Below, in pieces: positions 1 through 56,072 of a DNA stretch of 64,000 bases; the first letter of the stretch is position 1; every line of letters starts with the position of its first letter. A model generated the notes under the pieces. That model did no database searches, was not told the DNA's origin, and saw nothing but the letters and a program-made list of their open reading frames with translations. The DNA lies in contig NC_087256.1 in the NCBI RefSeq assembly GCF_037042905.1, forward strand, positions 6,944,001 to 7,008,000. The letters are read 5' to 3'. This DNA comes from Lytechinus pictus. Its lineage: Eukaryota. Made by a program: the position numbers and the translations under genes.

Positions 1-1142
1 CTGTGTCCCCCCATAGGTCGAACATAAATTCGGCGCCCCCAGGTCGAATGTTATTTCGGCCCCCCTATGTCGAACATCGACTTGGTGCCCCTCGGTGAAA
101 CATCAATTCAGCGCCCCTAGCTTGAAAATCGATTTGGCGCCCCCCGCAAGTTGAACATTGATTCGGTGTCCCCCCCCCCCCCATGTCGAACTTAAATTCG
201 GCGCCCGAAAGGTTGAACGCCAATTCGACGCCTCTTCCCTAGATCAAACATTAATTCGGCGCCCTGTAGGTCAAACAACAATTCAGCGCCGCCAAGGTTA
301 AACACCAATTCAGCACCCCTAGGTCAAATGTCAATTCGACGCCCCCTAGATCGAACGTAACTTCGGCGCCCCCTACGTCGATCATAAATTCGGTGCGCCC
401 CTATGTCGAACATCAGTTCAGTGACCACCTAGGTTGAGCATCATTTCGGCCCCCCCCCCCCATGTCGAACATCAATTCGACGCGCCCCTATGTCGAACAT
501 CGATTCAGCGCCCCCAGGTTGAACACCAATTCAGCGCCCCTAGGTCGAATGTCAATTCGACGCCCCCTAGGTCGAACATTAATTCGGCGACCCCATATGT
601 CGGACATCAATTCGGCGCCCCCTTATGTCGAACATCAGTTCGGCGCCCCCCCCCAGGTTGAACATTGATTCCATGTCCCCACCCCCAGGTCAAACATAAA
701 TTTGGCACCCCCAGGTCGAATGTCATTTCGGCCCCCCTATGTCGAACATCGATTTGGTGCCCCTAGGTGGAACATCAATTCAGCGCCCCTAGCTTGAAAA
801 TCGATTTGGCGCCCCCCCTCGCAGGTTGAACATTGATTCGGTGCCCCCCCCCCCCCCGCGGTCGAACTTAAATTCGGCGCCCCAAAGGTTGAACACCAAT
901 TCGACGCCTCTCCCCTAGATCAAACATTGATTCAGCCCCCCTAGGTCGAACATCAATTCAGCGACCCTCTAGGTTGAACATCATTTCGTAACTTGCTATG
1001 TCGAACATCAATTCAGCGCCCCCAAGGTTAAACACCAATCCAGCACCCCTAGGTCGAATGTCAATTCGACGTCCCCTAGATCGAACGTAAATTCGGCGCC
1101 CTCTACGTCGATCATAAATTCGGTGCACCCCTATGTCGAACA
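1..1142. repeat. C-rich satellite, ~27-30 bp unit (consensus ~TAKGTCGAACATCAATTCGGCGCCCCC), block 1
   Basis: Tandem degenerate copies are directly visible. A higher-order repeat is also visible: the variant series starting at ~1 recurs starting at ~672. The ORFs here are repeat artefacts. Confidence 0.95.
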
Positions 1143-22752: not shown

Positions 22753-24094
22753 GTATGTATGTATGTATGTATTTATTTCCATATAAAACAAATAATATAC
22801 ATAATCAAATTACAAGAAGAAAAAGAAAAATCGTCAAATGAAATATGGAGGATTGCCCATTTCAGCGGCATTAACATAATGCCGCTGTTCTTCCATGGGG
22901 TCCTTTGCAACGTAAACATGGTAAATACGTATTATAACAAAAAAATACACAATACTTAATCAGTAACATAACAAGGAAAAAAATGCAAAGACTAAAACTA
23001 ACTTACGGTTAAAAAATATCCCATTGTGGAAATGCCCCCCTCCCCTTTAACCCACCCTACTATTGATTACTTAAACGCCCAATTTAGTCTGTTATTACAC
23101 CGGTTACTATCGTATGGCAGTGAATAAGGGATTGCGGATTTCAAATATCAAAATAGTCAAAAAAAATCTGAACGTGTTTATTAAATATATTAAGTGTGTC
23201 CAGCTGGCGTAGCTTGAGTGGTAGTTTATTGTACAAGACAGATCCACGATATAAGAATGTACGTTTACATTGATTTGTTCTTGGTTTGGGAAGCATTAGG
23301 TCTGAATTTGATCTTAGTCCATAGTGCTTTTCGTTAAAAACAAATTTATCAGTCATATAATCGGGCGTTAACTTATGGAATGTTTTAAATAATAATGCGT
23401 ACATGTGTCTCCTACGACGAGACTTTAGAGTTTCCCACTTCAACACATGGTGAATATGATGAACTGATTTATGTTCATAGGGGTTGACTCGAAGAATAAT
23501 TCTTCCCGCTCTATTCTGGAGCTTCTGGATTTGGTCAAGATAATTTTTATTGGTACTTTGCCAAACAGTGTCCGCATAATCGAAATGGGGTAAAATCACA
23601 GAAGAATAAATCAATTTGAGATTTGACTCGTTAATAAAATATCTCAGTCTCCTTAGAAAACCAATAATTTTCCCAATCTTTTTGTTCAGTTGCTCTATAT
23701 GAATATTCCATTTAAGTTCAGGGTCCAAATTTAATCCAAGATATTTGAAATTCGTCACTTGATTTAGTCTATCTGAATTTAACTTGATATTGAGAGTATG
23801 ACGTTTAGAAAGCATACTCTTTGTTCCAATTAACATACACACTGTTTTACTAGAGTTTATCATGAGTCTATTTATATTCATCCAAGACTGGAGGTTACCT
23901 AACTCTTCATTTAATACAGATTGAATCTCATCAACATCATTATGGGAATAATACAGAACCGTATCATCGGCATAGAAATGCAACTTACACTTTGTAAAGA
24001 ACAATGGTAAATCGTTAATGAAAATCAAGAACAACAGCGGGCCTATTATTGACCCCTGAGGCACTCCATAATCAAGGGTTAATACATTAGATAA
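22753..24094 (-). mobile_element. 5'-truncated L2/CR1-group LINE, copy 1 (RT C-terminal half, 3' UTR and (TACA)n tail)
   Basis: ORF 23141-24139 has the RT motifs GVPQGSIIGPLLFLIFINDL, YADD and FKYLG, and a C-terminal LPKPRTN...RTFLYRG..LYN.LP. The minus-strand 3' end reads AAATAAATACATACATAC at 22753-22778. Confidence 0.93.
23141..24094 (-). pseudogene. Reverse transcriptase (LINE ORF2) C-terminal fragment, ~317 uninterrupted codons
   Basis: RT motifs as above. The first ~15 residues of the listed ORF (MMLSPGAAGLIQVKT) come from the flanking repeat, not from the LINE. Confidence 0.9.
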
Positions 24095-24577
24095 TGTTTT
24101 GACCTGGATCAATCCTGCAGCTCCAGGACTTAGCATCACTTCAAAGATCTGTTAGATTTGATTTGGACCACTCAGTTCCGTTTTCAGGCGTGTTGGTCTG
24201 GATCCTGCAGCTACATGATATATTGTGACTTCTGCAGAGGTTGATTTGGACATATCAGTTCCTATTCCCAGTGTTTTGACCTGGATTAATAATGTAGCTC
24301 TGGGATCTATCATGATGTGAAAGATCTTGCTAGAGTTGATTTGGACCTCAGTGTCAGTTCCGTTTCTAGGCATGTTGGCCTGGATCCTGCAGCTATATGA
24401 TTGATCTACCATGACTCGATCCTGCAGAAGTTGATTTGGACCTGTCCTTTCTGTTTCCTGGTGTTTTGACCTGGATCAATCCTGCACCTCCATGATCCAT
24501 GACTTGAAAGCTTGTGTAGAAGTTGATTTCACCTGTAAGTTCCAATTGCAGGTATTTTGGCCGGGATCCTGCAGCTT
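24095..24577 (+). repeat. 483-bp direct duplication of 22270-22752
   Basis: Near-identical at offset 1825. I noticed only two substitutions. Confidence 0.93.
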
Positions 24578-45025: not shown

Positions 45026-46462
45026 ATGTTGCCAGGTGAGTTTATCGCGAGGCAATATGAAATGACCACCATCCATGGTTTAGTTACCATGGGGCGAGAT
45101 GCAAACCAATCATTCCGTACTTCGATCTTAACGCAATCGGCAATGTCGCTTGCAGGAGTAGAAATGACCGGGGCGAACACCAAGGAGTTTGACTTTGCAT
45201 CCGAAAACTCATCAAACAATGCATCAGAGTTTAATATGGGAGAATTCAGAGGTCCACTTGACGGCCAGAGTTTACCTAGGACTGTCATCGTGGGCTGCAT
45301 CCTATGTTTCTGCTGCAGCCTTACGATATTCGGAAATATGCTTGTGATTGCTGCTGTTTACAGAGAGCGAAACCTTCGGACGGTAACGAATTATTTCATA
45401 GTTTCTCTCGCCTTTGCTGATTTGCTAGTCGGAAGCATCGTCGTGCCATTCGCCATCATTGACACCTTGACAGCCGGATACTGGTTCTTTAATGCAATTT
45501 GGTGTGACCTATGGCATGCGTTTGATGTTCTGGGTTGTACGGCATCTATTCTGAACCTTTGTATCATTTCTTTGGACCGCTACTGGGCTGTCACACATCC
45601 GATGAGCTACCCAACCCGAGTTACCAAAAAGATGGCAGGATTCCTCATTGTCCTGGTCTGGCTCGCTTCAGCTGCAATCTCATTCCCTTGCATTCTGGTC
45701 TGGCGTGCCGTGGAGCCTCCGCAACCCCCGCAGAAGTGCATTTTCCCGCAGAACCCTTGGTATCTAGTGATATCCTCATGTGTATCTTTCTACCTCCCTA
45801 GTTTAATCATGATGTTCACTTACTACAAGATCTACAGGGCAGCTGTAACCCAAATGCGCCACATCCGGTCAGGAACTAAGCTTGTATCCGCTAAAGCAGC
45901 TGATAAAACCCATATGAACGGTGCGGTGTCCCTACGTATACATCGAGGAGGAGGCGTTAAGACAACCGGAAGCCCTCTGAGTAACCAACATTCCAATAAT
46001 AATTTACACAATGGACTACCGCCAGAAATGAGGCCCCTTAACGTGCGACGGGACACCAAAATCGCACTCACCCAAGCCGCTGGCCGTCGGCTTCTCTCTA
46101 GAATGAACAAAGAACACAAAGCTGCTAAGACTCTGGGTATAGTCGTCGGTGTCTTCATCCTCTGCTGGTTGCCTTTCTTCATCATCAATGTCATGGCGCC
46201 ATTTTGTTTTGAGACCTGCATCTTAGCCCCGGACCTTGTGATACCCCTCGCTACATGGCTTGGTTTCATTAACAGTGCATTAAACCCCGCAATCTACGCG
46301 TTCACCAGCCGGAACTTCAAGAGAGCGTTTAAGCGAATCCTATGCCAATGTTGCTTGCAGCAGAAAAAGAGGCAGTACATCGAGGGCCATTCTGTTAAAG
46401 ACAGCACCCGTTTCATGAGCATTGATTCAGTTTATTCCATGGGTGATATCGCTCTTCAGTAG
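45026..46462 (+). CDS. Dop1R2: Invertebrate-type D1-like dopamine receptor (Dop1R2/DAMB/INDR class), rhodopsin-family GPCR
   Basis: Seven TM helices with GN in TM1 and SLAFAD in TM2. TM3 carries the amine-binding Asp in WCDLWHAFDVLGCTASILNLCIISLDRYWAV. TM5 has the catechol-binding serines in SSCVSFYLP. Other motifs: TYYKIYRAAV..GTK.V and LRIHRGG in ICL3, KEHKAAKTLGIVVGVFILCWLPFF, and NSALNPAIY. These match the insect Dop1R2 class as I recall it; no search was run. The N-terminus may be spliced (see findings). Confidence 0.9.
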   Translation: MLPGEFIARQYEMTTIHGLVTMGRDANQSFRTSILTQSAMSLAGVEMTGANTKEFDFASENSSNNASEFNMGEFRGPLDGQSLPRTVIVGCILCFCCSLTIFGNMLVIAAVYRERNLRTVTNYFIVSLAFADLLVGSIVVPFAIIDTLTAGYWFFNAIWCDLWHAFDVLGCTASILNLCIISLDRYWAVTHPMSYPTRVTKKMAGFLIVLVWLASAAISFPCILVWRAVEPPQPPQKCIFPQNPWYLVISSCVSFYLPSLIMMFTYYKIYRAAVTQMRHIRSGTKLVSAKAADKTHMNGAVSLRIHRGGGVKTTGSPLSNQHSNNNLHNGLPPEMRPLNVRRDTKIALTQAAGRRLLSRMNKEHKAAKTLGIVVGVFILCWLPFFIINVMAPFCFETCILAPDLVIPLATWLGFINSALNPAIYAFTSRNFKRAFKRILCQCCLQQKKRQYIEGHSVKDSTRFMSIDSVYSMGDIALQ

Positions 46463-51820: not shown

Positions 51821-52638
51821 GCGGATTAAGATAAGGACTTTTATATGGGGTGTAAAATTTCACAATTATATACACACATACACACACCCTCATCACGCAC
51901 CCCCCCCCCCGCACACACACACACACATATAGAGTGCGTATCAAAAAAAAGTTTACATTTTGAAAAAAACTCTGGGAATTGATGTTTTATACTTATTGTT
52001 ATGTATCTGTTAGGTGCTCTCTACATGCTCTAGGTAACACAAGCTTGAGAAGTGAGGCTTTTGGTCATTATCAACAATTTATCTATAATCTTTACTTTAT
52101 TTGATTTCAAAATTTATATCGTTTCATAGAGATTTAATTACTATGCTTGTAAGAACCAATGTTTTCTTCATCATCCTCCAGCTTACGTTATCTGTTTCAT
52201 GAATATTCATATTCATTGTGACATAAATTATGCGCATTACCATTGCGCTTTGCGCTTTCACCACATAGCAACCAATGTTTTCATTTTGTAATTTGTGACA
52301 CTTCCTTTAAGAACAAGATAGAATACGGTAGGCATCCTGACCATAATAGTCTGTAATTACAGGTATGTCATCTTCATTTATATAATTATTATTTCAATCG
52401 AACTAATTATTTGTTATTTATCAATTAATTTATTTATTCATTCATTCATCTTTCTAATGAGATTATGGAATATATTTAACTTAATGATAATTCAATGATA
52501 ATTCATTGATGTGCAAGACAAACTTGGATGTTGTATCTCCTTATATTTTTTCAGACGCTTCTGACGAAGTCTTATCAAAGACGAAAGCTAAAGCTAAAAT
52601 GGTGTCCTGCGTCATCTTTTGAGTTGGCCTCATCACAA

Positions 52639-52657
52639 TATATATATATATATATAC

Positions 52658-52712
<55 letters not shown>
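52639..52712. repeat. (TA)n(TG)n microsatellite
   Basis: Directly visible. Confidence 0.9.
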
Positions 52713-52713
<1 letters not shown>

Positions 52714-52954
52714 AAAGTTATACATGTACAACAGCTTTGGCAACTCTTTTTATTTAAATATTGTAAAGAAATGGATGAAGAGAACAATGGTAGGCGTAGC
52801 TTAAATCAAGGTTCCCCCGAGCTATCTACCCTTTGGCGGCTTGTCATTGTTCGAAACCCACCTTCACCCGACAAAGGAAATTATAATTGGTATAGTGTCG
52901 AAAATTTGTCTATCTGACGGTCAGTCGGATCGGGGTCGCCCTAGCCACTAACCC

Positions 52955-53026
52955 GTCTCTGTGGTCTAGTGGTTAAGGCACCGGCGTTCAAAGCTGGGGG
53001 CCCGGGTTCGATTCCCGGCAGAGACA
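52955..53026 (+). tRNA. tRNA-like gene with UCA anticodon (opal-suppressor type, tRNA-Glu-like body, not tRNA-Sec)
   Basis: 72 nt. Acceptor stem GTCTCTG/CAGAGAC, D stem GTCT/AGGC, anticodon stem CCGGC/GCTGG with loop GT-TCA-AA (anticodon 52988-52990), 4-nt variable loop, T stem CCGGG/CCCGG with loop TTCGATT, and A73. A box TGGTCTAGTGG, B box GGTTCGATTCC. G32 is atypical. Function is unproven. Confidence 0.75.
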
Positions 53027-53032
53027 TTTTTT
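53027..53032 (+). terminator. Pol III oligo-T terminator (T6)
   Basis: TTTTTT immediately after the discriminator base. Confidence 0.7.
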
Positions 53033-53105
53033 CGGCGTCACCAATTTTTCCAAAAGGGTAGATAGCTCTGGGGAACCTTGATTTAAGCTACGCCTACCAT
53101 TGTTC

Positions 53106-53312
53106 NNNNNNNNNNNNNNNNNNNNNNNNNNNNNNNNNNNNNNNNNNNNNNNNNNNNNNNNNNNNNNNNNNNNNNNNNNNNNNNNNNNNNNNNNNNNNNN
53201 NNNNNNNNNNNNNNNNNNNNNNNNNNNNNNNNNNNNNNNNNNNNNNNNNNNNNNNNNNNNNNNNNNNNNNNNNNNNNNNNNNNNNNNNNNNNNNNNNNNN
53301 NNNNNNNNNNNN
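53106..53312. other. Assembly gap (207 N)
   Basis: Run of N. Confidence 1.
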
Positions 53313-54493
53313 CATAATGATTAATTACAACCATTCATCATTCTCATGATAGATGCCAGTTCACATTATCATTCAGTAATTTGGCTTTCAAACAAGCGAA
53401 TATGAGTTGCATTCTCTCGGTTCATTTTCCACTTTAGGTTACAAGAAATTTTAAGAGCGACGCGTATAAGAGAGTCTTCTATATTTGGACTACGTTGCCT
53501 CCTGACATTTATTTCTATACGTACGTAAATAATTCCTTGCAAATCTATTTTGTTTGGATTTCCCACTAACTCGAGTAATGAACAATACAAATCTTGTGTT
53601 TCTACCTGCGAAAGAAATTGTCTATTTTTATACGTATGTATACACGGAGGCCGTCAGTACGTTTGCTCCTATTTCGTTAAGGAGCAAAAAAATGTATATA
53701 TATATATTTTATCAAGTAATTTTTAATTCATACTCTACTCAAAATTTAAAACAATAGGCATACTAAATACAAACCATTGCCCAGTCTGATTTCATTTTTT
53801 TCTTATTTGTTCATGGCAAATTCGATATTTTCGAATTTTTAGTAATTGCCCAGATGCCACATTATTCATTGAGTTTAATTCAGAAATTTTGCCTTTCTAC
53901 TGAATCTGAAATCTATTTCATTGCAATTTAGAAATTGATTGACAATTTGCATCTATCATTTACTCTGATGAGCACCTCTTTGTGGGACCTGATAGGGCAC
54001 TGGATAGCACACCATGTTAGTTTAGCGCCCGTGTCGCTGGATCGCGAGACTCCCATTCTACCCGCTGATCAATCGCGCCTATTGAATCCATCGTAAATTC
54101 GTAAATTATATCTAAAAAGTTTGTTGCATCACTACCAGACAAACGCTCCGGCGCGTCGCGGCGTCACGACATTCAATTAGACAATTTGAGTAGCCTATTT
54201 ACATTTGACTGAAAATCAATGGCATTCTACTAAAAAATTTCAAAACGATTTCTGGGGAGAGGTGCAAGTCAAAGGAAAACATTGGATTTCACTATCGTAT
54301 ATGATATCAGTTCCTAAAAGAGTGACAAGGATTCGAATAAATCTGAATAAATTTTTAATTTCGCGTGTGGTTTTTCAATACCCCTCGCAATAAAAACTGC
54401 GCTGTTGTTCCCACGGTGGTCATTTTCCTGAGATTATGAGCTCGATTTTTAGCACCACCAAACAGAACACAGTACATGTATTGAAAATGCAAG

Positions 54494-55020
54494 TGGAGAG
54501 CTGAGAGGACTTTGTCGAAAACTGGTGAACCGGGACAAGCAGATCGTCCTAATAATAAATAAAGATGCTTTAATAGGAGGAAATTATAATGTGTAAACAA
54601 ATTTTCGGCATTACTCCCATGTGTTTAAGATATGTGATCTGCAATATAAGTCAGATAAAATTGGAACCAGTGGGATTCGAAGAGGATCGAGGGTATTTGA
54701 ATTCCAGTCCATCGTGATTTAGCCGTGAACCAGAATAGCCTGGTGGTTAAGTCGCTGCCCGGAAAGCAGTAGATGGCATGTTCGAATCCCACTGGTTACA
54801 ATTTTTCTGACTTATGATTTTCATTACAGATCGAGCATGCGATCTTAAACACATAGGAGCAATGCCGAAAATTTGTTTACAGATCGTCCTAAGTTTCGGA
54901 GCTGACGACAAATTGCAAATATGTCGTTTGTCCAGATTCCGGGATAAAACTGCTGTTTTCATTCACCAATTTTCGACAAAGACTTCTTGACATAGCGAGG
55001 ATGAAGACTGCTCAGCTCTG
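54494..55020. repeat. Long imperfect inverted repeat (arms ~54494-54681 and ~54781-55020) around a tRNA-like core
   Basis: Three paired segments: AACCAGTGGGATTCGAA with TTCGAATCCCACTGGTT; GTAAACAAATTTTCGGCATTACTCCCATGTGTTTAAGAT with ATCTTAAACACATAGGAGCAATGCCGAAAATTTGTTTAC; and CTTTGTCGAAAACTGGTGAA with TTCACCAATTTTCGACAAAG. Confidence 0.8.
54725..54800 (+). pseudogene. Degenerate tRNA-like module (pseudo-tRNA or SINE-like head), loop CCGGAAA
   Basis: A-box-like TAGCCTGGTGG, anticodon stem GCTGC/GCAGT, B-box-like GTTCGAATCC and a T5 tract at 54802-54806. The T stem and acceptor stem are damaged. Confidence 0.6.
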
Positions 55021-56072
55021 CACTGTTGATAAATTACTTTATTAAATATACATGTATCGCCACAGTAATCATGAGAAGAAATTTGTAATCTCATTAATAT
55101 TTTCCCATCATGCAACGTAACGGAAGCTCGCGCTCTGTCGTCAACGATGAATACTACCACCGGAAAGGGTTAATGAGAAACGACACGTCGGGAATATATT
55201 GCTCATTTTTTAAATCCAGTTTTAGAATGGGGGGGGGGGGTAAGTTGTTCTTTGGGTGAAAGGCCAAACGAAAGTGATCCGATCGATGAGTTGGATGATG
55301 AAGCAGATGTTTTCCTACTCGATCTCTTCTGTTCTATACGTGTTGTTATTCCTTGCGGCGTAACCAAAGTCTACCTCAAACCCACAGGGCATGGGGTTAA
55401 AATGCGCCGAGGATTTCGCCTCCGTAGGGACTCGCGGCTGTGCGGTTGGTGCATGGTGTGCAAAAATCGTTTGTATTTTTGTCATATGAAACCTCAATTG
55501 TATCATTTAAAGTGAGCTCTGCTCTGCTTTGGCGATGCAGCCTTATATCTCAAAATGTTAATGTGTATAGGAAAGTGCAAAACACTGCTACTGTTTTGCA
55601 ACTGGATTATGTTCACCCTTGAGAGCCCTTTCATGCTTGGGTTATATTGACTACACCTACAACATCGTAATTTGTCGCTTCTCTGGTATAGGTATAACTA
55701 AAGAAGTTCAAGTAGACTACTATACTATCTGATATATAGTCTATTAATGTTACATGTCCAACAGGCTAATTTGATCTAGCTTCCACATTTAGAGTACACC
55801 CCCTTAATAATCGTACTGGGACAGGGCTTCATGTCTTGTTGTTGCTGTACATAGCTTTTATAATGAATAAATCACCGGAAATTATACTGTTCACAATGGA
55901 ACTGTTATTGTTACGTTGGTTTTTCAGTAAAACAATATGTTCATGTCGAGTGCATGATGTTTATCCATAAATTCAATTCAATACCAGCGCACTTTATTTA
56001 ACACAACTACAAATTTTTCAAACCTTACAAACATTTTACATGTACCATGTGGCCTTATTTTGTTTAATTAAA

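Follow-up and report, generated by a model that had tools for sequence, protein, structure and literature searches.

Insertions of Penelope-like elements (PLEs) are highly 5′-truncated, occur as partial tandems, and carry an inverted 5′-truncated copy that adjoins the 5′ end (Craig et al., 2021, PMC8557442). A preference for (TA)n targets has been described for PLEs of the Naiad, Hydra, Neptune and Nematis types (Craig et al., 2021, PMC8557442), and this preference is ascribed to a CX2-5CxxC linker located upstream of the GIY-YIG nuclease (PMC8557442). The non-LTR retrozymes of animals are tandem derivatives of PLEs (Cervera & de la Pena, 2020, PMC7229834; Li, Clavereau & Pollet, 2026, preprint, 10.64898/2026.07.22.740005), and what sets retrozymes apart by definition is that each of their units contains a type I hammerhead (PMC7229834; 10.64898/2026.07.22.740005). 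In this study, we describe a repeat from Lytechinus pictus that lies in a stretch of 64,000 nucleotides, referred to here as the window. The best reading of this repeat is that of a non-autonomous, PLE-type, retrozyme-like passenger that lacks a ribozyme and carries a module derived from tRNA-Glu. We consider it probable that the window contains a single insertion from a non-autonomous family with 405-bp units, which would spread into (TA)n by way of an RNA copy and the insertion machinery of PLEs; the RNA step of this spread is what we infer from the architecture of the insertions.

The repeat resembles the (TA)n-preferring PLEs in its insertion into (TA)n, its partial tandems and its inverted 5′-truncated copy, and it shares the same microsatellites with them. 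However, the 405-bp family lacks both an ORF and a hammerhead, it has no detectable sequence in common with the PLE families compared, and it carries a tRNA-like gene. Similarly, its non-coding tandem units of a few hundred bp, its predicted structured RNA and its presumed dependence on PLEs recall the animal non-LTR retrozymes, whereas the 405-bp unit contains a tRNA cloverleaf and no hammerhead. A hammerhead is present in most PLE terminal repeats.

The original prediction, which was made from the window sequence, was that of a transposon with terminal inverted repeats (TIRs) of ~54 bp that enclose a tRNA. The inverted repeat itself is real, and its two arms (52782-52834 and 53053-53105) are 53 nt long, 98% complementary and spaced by 218 nt. 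However, these arms do not mark the termini of an element, because the homology to the repeat unit on the left side reaches position 52709 and forms an arm of 128 nt. The TIRs represent the place at which two copies of the 405-bp repeat in opposite orientations meet (Table 1), with an overlap of 3 nt. The inverted copy includes the left arm, and the copy on the plus strand, which is cut off by a run of N, includes the right arm. Because the right arm is cut by this run, the arm length of 54 bp is an artefact of masking, and the left arm is the stretch of the inverted second copy whose counterpart can still be seen ahead of the masked sequence. The N run, which is also covered by locus L001, a locus left out of the analysis, must contain the right end of the insertion; the window sequence from position 53313 onward is unique and unrelated to the repeat family. 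No target-site duplication was found outside the left arm of the window copy, where the unit sequence gives way to the microsatellite. The microsatellite into which the tRNA-bearing repeat was inserted also adjoins or contains the 3′ end of a PLE fragment. Two other features of the window were noted. An uninterrupted ORF of 478 aa at 45026-46462, 6 kb upstream of the repeat, belongs to a rhodopsin-family 7TM receptor (Pfam 7tm_1, E 7.6e-73), and an ORF fragment on the minus strand at 23141-24139 contains a reverse-transcriptase domain (RVT_1, E 8.6e-15) of a separate retroelement.

Table 1. Features of the repeat insertion and its surroundings in the window. Unit positions refer to the 405-bp reference unit, the position 1 of which is window position 52834.
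Feature	Window position	Unit position	Strand	Basis or remark
PLE 3′ fragment, 5′-truncated, C-terminal GIY-YIG type	51977-52678		+	83% identity over 700 bp to the L073 3′ region; feature without the microsatellite, 51977-52637
(AT)n(GT)n microsatellite, insertion target	52638-52708		.	Read from sequence
405-bp unit, inverted 5′-truncated copy	52709-52836	344 down to 217	-	99.2% identity over 128 nt
405-bp unit, copy from regular 5′ end	52834-53105	1-271	+	99.3% identity
tRNA-like gene, 72 nt	52955-53026	122-193	+	ARAGORN, Rfam tRNA
A box	52962-52972		+	
Anticodon TCA	52988-52990		+	
B box	53005-53015		+	
T6 run, Pol III terminator-like	53027-53032	194-199	+	Directly after the discriminator base
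Second T run, T5	53045-53049	212-216	+	12 nt after T6
N run (masked or gap)	53106-53312		.	

The tRNA-like gene is the only tRNA that ARAGORN found in the whole 64-kb window, and the anticodon was reported as tca. The Rfam tRNA model (RF00005) matched the gene over its full length with 60.9 bits (E 1.8e-12, cut-off 29), a score inside the range of 51-75 bits reached by genuine tRNA genes of the same genome. All four stems are paired, with 7 pairs in the acceptor stem, all of them Watson-Crick, 4 pairs in the D stem and 5 pairs in the anticodon stem, each of the latter two including one G-U, and 5 pairs in the T stem. The conserved tertiary nucleotides are present, and the energy of the cloverleaf is -29.6 kcal/mol compared with a minimum free energy of -30.4. 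These results bear out the 72-nt cloverleaf with a TCA anticodon, the good A and B boxes and the T6 run directly behind it, all of which had been read from the sequence at the outset. The anticodon loop is GTTCAAA, with UCA at positions 34-36 and with U33 and A37 present; position 32, a pyrimidine in a canonical loop, is occupied by G, as had been cautioned. The gene is not a tRNA-Sec, because it has a 7/5 fold and a 4-nt variable loop in its 72 nt, with no long arm and no 9/4 (or 8/5) fold.

The proposed origin from tRNA-Glu, with acceptor and anticodon stems that have been paired anew, also agrees with a comparison with the tRNA-Glu genes of the genome. The D arm and the T arm are letter-identical to those of the genome's own tRNA-Glu(UUC) and tRNA-Glu(CUC) genes, and the acceptor and anticodon stems are unlike those of the tRNA-Glu genes. 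Four of the seven acceptor pairs are changed on both sides relative to tRNA-Glu(UUC), and the pairing register of the anticodon stem is shifted by one base, downstream of an extra A in the D loop. The unit thereby resembles the tRNA-derived SINEs, with which it has in common a tRNA-derived part (tRNA-Glu), A and B boxes, a high copy number and, probably, RNA-mediated spread. Unlike in these SINEs, the tRNA occupies a central position (122-193 of the 405-bp unit) with T6 and T5 directly behind it, the cloverleaf is fully intact, and there is neither a LINE-type tail nor poly(A). The 5′ tRNA head and the Pol III read-through of the body, by which a SINE is recognized, are not features of the 405-bp unit; because of the T6 and T5 runs that follow the tRNA, Pol III starting from the tRNA promoter would be unable to transcribe the whole unit. 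Elsewhere in the genome, a large cluster at C4:9.70-9.74 Mb contains dozens of high-scoring tRNA genes in direct orientation, and the genome as a whole contains ~73,000 loose tRNA-like candidates, which suggests that additional families of tRNA-derived repeats exist.

When the 324-bp query was searched against the whole assembly, more than 170 strong matches were obtained, most of which comprised query positions 53-324 and were spaced by exactly 405 bp, and no match was longer than the unit. At one locus, Tandem Repeats Finder reported a period of 405 bp and 100% identity over 8 units. A 32-nt pattern of the anticodon arm in which the loop was left free matched 2,259 times genome-wide, a 16-mer of the D arm matched 2,599 times, and we take the copy number of the family to be at least 2,259 genome-wide. 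The spacing of units within the family is 405-412 bp, the arrays include at least 17 units (C4) and at least 36 units (C2), and single and double copies are found on every large contig. The 53-nt sequence of the supposed TIR occurs once per tandem unit, and an AATAAA motif is present on the sense strand at unit position 299. With at least 2,259 matches and the arrays, the tRNA-shaped gene belongs to a family that is mobile and has a high copy number, as had been anticipated, and not a lone SINE within one MITE copy.

The per-site statistics of the family refer to about 17 loci together with the read tables. At every independent locus mapped, tracts of (TA)n or (CA)n(TA)n surround the outer ends, with (TA)n at the outer ends in all 14 of the 14 loci displayed; target-site duplications are unreadable inside such microsatellites. 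Within the unit, a small set of AT-rich positions (about 294-302, 334-336, 344 and 352) accounts for the outward ends, which show TA microhomology, and unit positions 353-405 are present only between tandem units. A second copy, inverted and head to head with the first, occurs in 12 of the 17 loci, including the window. At the centres of these pairs, one partner begins at unit position 1 (6-8 in older copies), and the other is cut variably at positions 119-253. One locus (L027) consists of (TA)n, unit 1-302 and (TA)n, that is, 0.75 of a unit with no inverted arm.

These observations bear directly on the cut-and-paste MITE with 54-bp terminal inverted repeats that was originally proposed. At first glance, the 53-nt inverted repeat with its 98% complementarity and the TA-rich target, which is that of Tc1/mariner-type MITEs, speak for such an element, and the Stowaway and Tc1-mariner MITEs are likewise short and non-coding. 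However, the left arm of the window copy runs on as unit sequence, other loci have inverted arms of other lengths, starting at unit positions 119 to 253, or none, as in L027, and the tandem units hold one arm each. In contrast to the repeats of a MITE, the inverted arm varies, may be missing and lies within the tandem unit, and the copies are not delimited by terminal repeats or TA duplications. Since the inverted arm is a variably 5′-truncated second copy, it is not the terminal inverted repeat of a transposon, and we regard a cut-and-paste origin as extremely improbable.

A spread at the level of DNA was also considered. According to this explanation, the family is a satellite that moves from one fragile (TA)n tract to another, either in the form of extrachromosomal circles or through recombination or microhomology repair, in which case reverse transcription is not involved and the inverted joints are products of repair. 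Arrays with 100% identity, TA microhomology at every outer end, and the fact that neither a partner element nor a ribozyme was found are all compatible with such a satellite, and the depth of RNA-seq reads, which is described below, mirrors the DNA copy number. However, independent loci have a common inner end at unit positions 1-8, which the opening of circles or random breakage would not yield. Moreover, the combination of one full copy and one 5′-truncated inverted copy recurs at 12 of 17 loci, as it does in PLE insertions, and insertions are as small as 0.75 of a unit (L027). A DNA-level satellite therefore appears to us an unlikely, if serious, alternative.

We prefer a PLE-type passenger with twin priming because the layout of the insertions, when the tRNA strand is taken as the sense strand, equals the layout of PLEs. 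Partial and multiple tandems, an inverted 5′-truncated copy at the 5′ end and a bias for (TA)n were all found; none of the 24 loci compared revealed a resident autonomous PLE whose terminal region has sequence in common with the unit. The T6/T5 block to transcription and the fact that neither a partner PLE nor a hammerhead was found count against the PLE-passenger reading, as does the fact that the RNA-seq data revealed no RNA with the predicted ends.

The genome contains potential donors of the machinery in the sense that 468 matches were obtained for GIY-YIG candidates, the translated PLE copies carry the CX2-5CxxC linker (KCCICPF...), and near-identical intact copies (L073 type) have an ORF of 954 aa with a C-terminal nuclease. 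At least 7 PLE families end in (TA)n. At L027, the 3′ end of an element from another PLE family lies before the microsatellite, and a copy of the 405-bp family lies within 1.5 kb of 3 of the 30 PLE loci fetched. A scan of 30 PLE loci for a tRNA-like gene revealed none apart from inserted copies of the 405-bp family, and a comparison of the unit sequence with the 3′ tails of 24 PLE loci (~7 families) and with three full 3′ UTRs revealed no similarity (z at most 1.6). No ribozyme was detected by Rfam on either strand of three tandem units at E values up to 1, and no CUGANGA box occurs on either strand of the unit. The sharp 5′ end would be accounted for by an HDV-like ribozyme starting at unit position 1, a candidate that was considered by eye and that had no Rfam support. 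The intact 954-aa PLE copies lie elsewhere in the genome, for example, L073 at C19:10.76 Mb; some of them are arranged head to head, and the 3′ region of the L073-type PLE holds a hammerhead-like motif, CUGAnGA...GAAA.

Under the PLE-type reading, insertion of the family could proceed as follows. At a break in (TA)n, each of the two strands would serve as a primer for reverse transcription on AU-rich stretches close to the 3′ end of the sense RNA (twin priming); one cDNA would reach the 5′ end of the RNA, and the other would stop early. Arrays could arise from RNAs that comprise several units or through later unequal exchange. The tRNA-Glu-derived module would be kept intact in the lineages that continue to amplify, and it most likely serves the element itself, either as a unit bound by Pol III/TFIIIC or as a module for structure or processing.

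Two RNA-seq runs from 2026 for the same species (X35 and X36), in each of which ~1.9 Gb was read, gave 1,100-1,660 reads on the unit. The depth is equal on both strands and follows the profile of genomic copy number, with a peak at unit positions 211-281, which are common to the full and the inverted copies. Most of these reads are 90-99% like the young consensus, and 35-59% of them continue into unrelated flanks. In neither run were piles of read starts or ends seen on the unit, nor a dip at the tRNA, nor an RNA with the predicted ends. Reads span the tandem joint (back 405 or 402) and the inverted joints; those across the 405-to-1 joint are the same as the reads that genomic tandems yield. 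Both libraries are standard RNA-seq and as such are uninformative on a mature product of 72 nt. This pattern could be read-through of scattered copies or carry-over of DNA. A subfamily represented by L028:690-1094, which has a 6-nt deletion near unit position 45, a period of 402 bp and TGA at the joint, accounts for about half of the X35 reads and almost none of the X36 reads. The contrast between the two runs indicates either sample-specific transcription or copy-number polymorphism of one array, and it suggests at least some genuine locus-specific transcription.

It is conceivable that the tRNA module stands in for the hammerhead in a cycle like that of retrozymes, in which RNase P and RNase Z would cut the transcripts of arrays to unit-length RNAs for reverse transcription. 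The tandem arrays, the PLE-like architecture without a hammerhead and the intact, conserved cloverleaf would suit such a cycle, and the retrozymes of animals are themselves tandem PLE derivatives that are processed to monomers (PMC7229834; bioRxiv 10.64898/2026.07.22.740005). However, the boundaries of insertion are at unit position 1 and at ~294-352, not at the ends of the tRNA (122 and 193), and the RNA-seq data contain neither piles of read ends nor a drop in depth at the tRNA. We give this cycle a slim chance. A broader version, namely, a Penelope-dependent retrozyme-like repeat in which the hammerhead was swapped for a tRNA processed by the host, with RNase P and RNase Z punctuating the array transcripts or with a UGA-matching tRNA mimic made by Pol III acting in trans for the element, also has a small chance of being correct.

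The UCA anticodon raises the question of whether the family consists of working opal (UGA) suppressor tRNA genes on a mobile element. The full cloverleaf with its 60.9 bits, the good A and B boxes and the terminator are what such genes would have; UCA is present in 92 of the 100 copies listed, and the module is conserved among subfamilies. With the opal suppressor tRNAs and tRNA-Sec, the module has the UCA anticodon and the loop sequence UUCAAA in common. It differs from them in its 7/5 fold, its 4-nt variable loop and G32, and, as judged from the sequence, it appears to have no known identity set. G32 is almost never present in decoding tRNAs, which counts against a suppressor. The identity of tRNA-Glu lies largely in the anticodon, which is read by GluRS, and the UCA derivative should therefore be without Glu identity; for other synthetases, neither a G3:U70 pair nor a long variable arm is available. 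In addition, carrying more than 2,000 active suppressor genes would be expected to harm the organism. The loop is mutated in about 5 of about 46 loci, at ~1.6% per site, which is the neutral level, and the intact ORFs of the resident PLEs have no in-frame stop and hence no need for UGA decoding. Given the atypical G32, the loop mutations in the copies and the lack of a discrete product in the RNA-seq data, the mobile stop suppressor that was originally envisaged is not upheld; a working opal suppressor is unlikely, and we put its probability very low.

A related candidate, in which the element would act as the UGA reader for recoded PLE ORFs, was rejected. Selenocysteine recoding has been reported for the Naiads of clams and spiders. 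In L. pictus, the in-frame stops inside GIY-YIG matches (L043, L058, L060 and L063) are TGA in 6 of 8 cases, and the intact ORFs are free of stops. In the three that are alignable (L043, L060 and L063), TGA occupies sites that are Arg, not Cys, in intact relatives, and these stops therefore look like ordinary decay rather than selenocysteine recoding.

The proposal that selection acts on the RNA fold must be divided. Across subfamilies and in the sister species, the module is less variable than its flanks, which lends modest support to the proposal, whereas the anticodon loop of single copies decays at about the neutral rate. Among the copies compared, differences from the reference amount to 0.63% in the tRNA, for which the bins begin one base early (121-192), versus 0.9-3.1% in the other segments. 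Four of the five copies tabulated with 92-96% identity (both L004 copies, L003 and L005) have 0 changes in the 72 tRNA positions, and about 5% of their flanks is changed; the fifth copy, L064, has 4 changes in the tRNA. In the sister species (organism B), 3 changes are fixed in the 121-nt 5′ flank and 0 in the tRNA. In a diverged subfamily in the RNA run X35, the 5′ flank differs by a deletion of 6 nt and five substitutions, the 3′ part shows several changes, and the only change in the tRNA is A69 to G, by which the pair is retained as U-G. For the three conserved comparisons, ~7-8 tRNA changes are expected from the flank rates and one was observed. A rough Poisson estimate for this low variability is about 0.004, a figure that comes from few, partly related and non-independent lineages; because the lineages are not independent, the support for a constraint on the module is modest. 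One contig of organism C has 5 changes in the tRNA (9 across its 133 bases), including G32 to A and two that break stems, and decayed lineages therefore exist as well. We consider that the module may be under constraint in the lineages that amplify, and the support for this from the sequences compared is modest.

For single copies, the anticodon loop offers a direct view. Among the first 100 anticodon arms listed, UCA is present in 92 (about 41 of about 46 loci), and the loop is mutated in the other 8 (5 of about 46 loci) to GTTCATA, GTTCTTA, GTTCTAA, GTTCAAT or GATCAAA. The rate of anticodon-loop mutation corresponds to the neutral level of the family, and by this measure the loop of single copies appears to be without constraint and to decay at about the neutral rate.

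A false lead has thus been removed, in that the insertion is not a TIR transposon and nothing indicates a mobile stop suppressor. The family is instead an abundant non-coding repeat with the insertion signature of PLEs, which lacks their ribozyme and carries a tRNA module that is conserved and intact. Should the link to the reverse transcriptase of PLEs be true, the known PLE-dependent passengers would extend beyond the hammerhead retrozymes, and the family would be a convenient substrate for studies of target choice by PLEs at (TA)n and of the way in which tandem and inverted copies are built. It would also account for the thousands of "suppressor tRNA" calls that tRNA finders are expected to make in this genome and in its relatives.

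The RNA of the 405-nt unit is predicted to fold into a long rod (-142 kcal/mol, z = -6.8 compared with shuffles). Unit positions 1-108 correspond, in diverged form, to the reverse complement of positions 159-260, that is, of the sequence from the T arm of the tRNA onward (alignment score of the arms 46, compared with 20 ± 4 in shuffles), and because of this inverted duplication the RNA would form a rod with the tRNA at its tip. When the cloverleaf is enforced in the model, the outer stem is still formed. The G-U pairs in the rod number 5 on one strand versus 2 on the other, so that neither strand is favoured and no evidence of selection on the RNA rod is obtained. The present unit may itself be an older insertion, composed of an inverted truncated copy and a full copy, of an ancestor that started at the tRNA; the composite left by this older foldback insertion would have become the new unit. 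A second long foldback (54492-55024) was observed 1.5 kb away, with a degenerate tRNA-like core, CTGGTGGTTAAG ... GTTCGAATCC, followed by T5. Its left arm holds the reverse complement of a T arm, and its plan is that of unit positions 1-270 of the family. The likeness of its sequence to the family is weak (z 2.2), it lies outside (TA)n, and it is not a tRNA according to Rfam.
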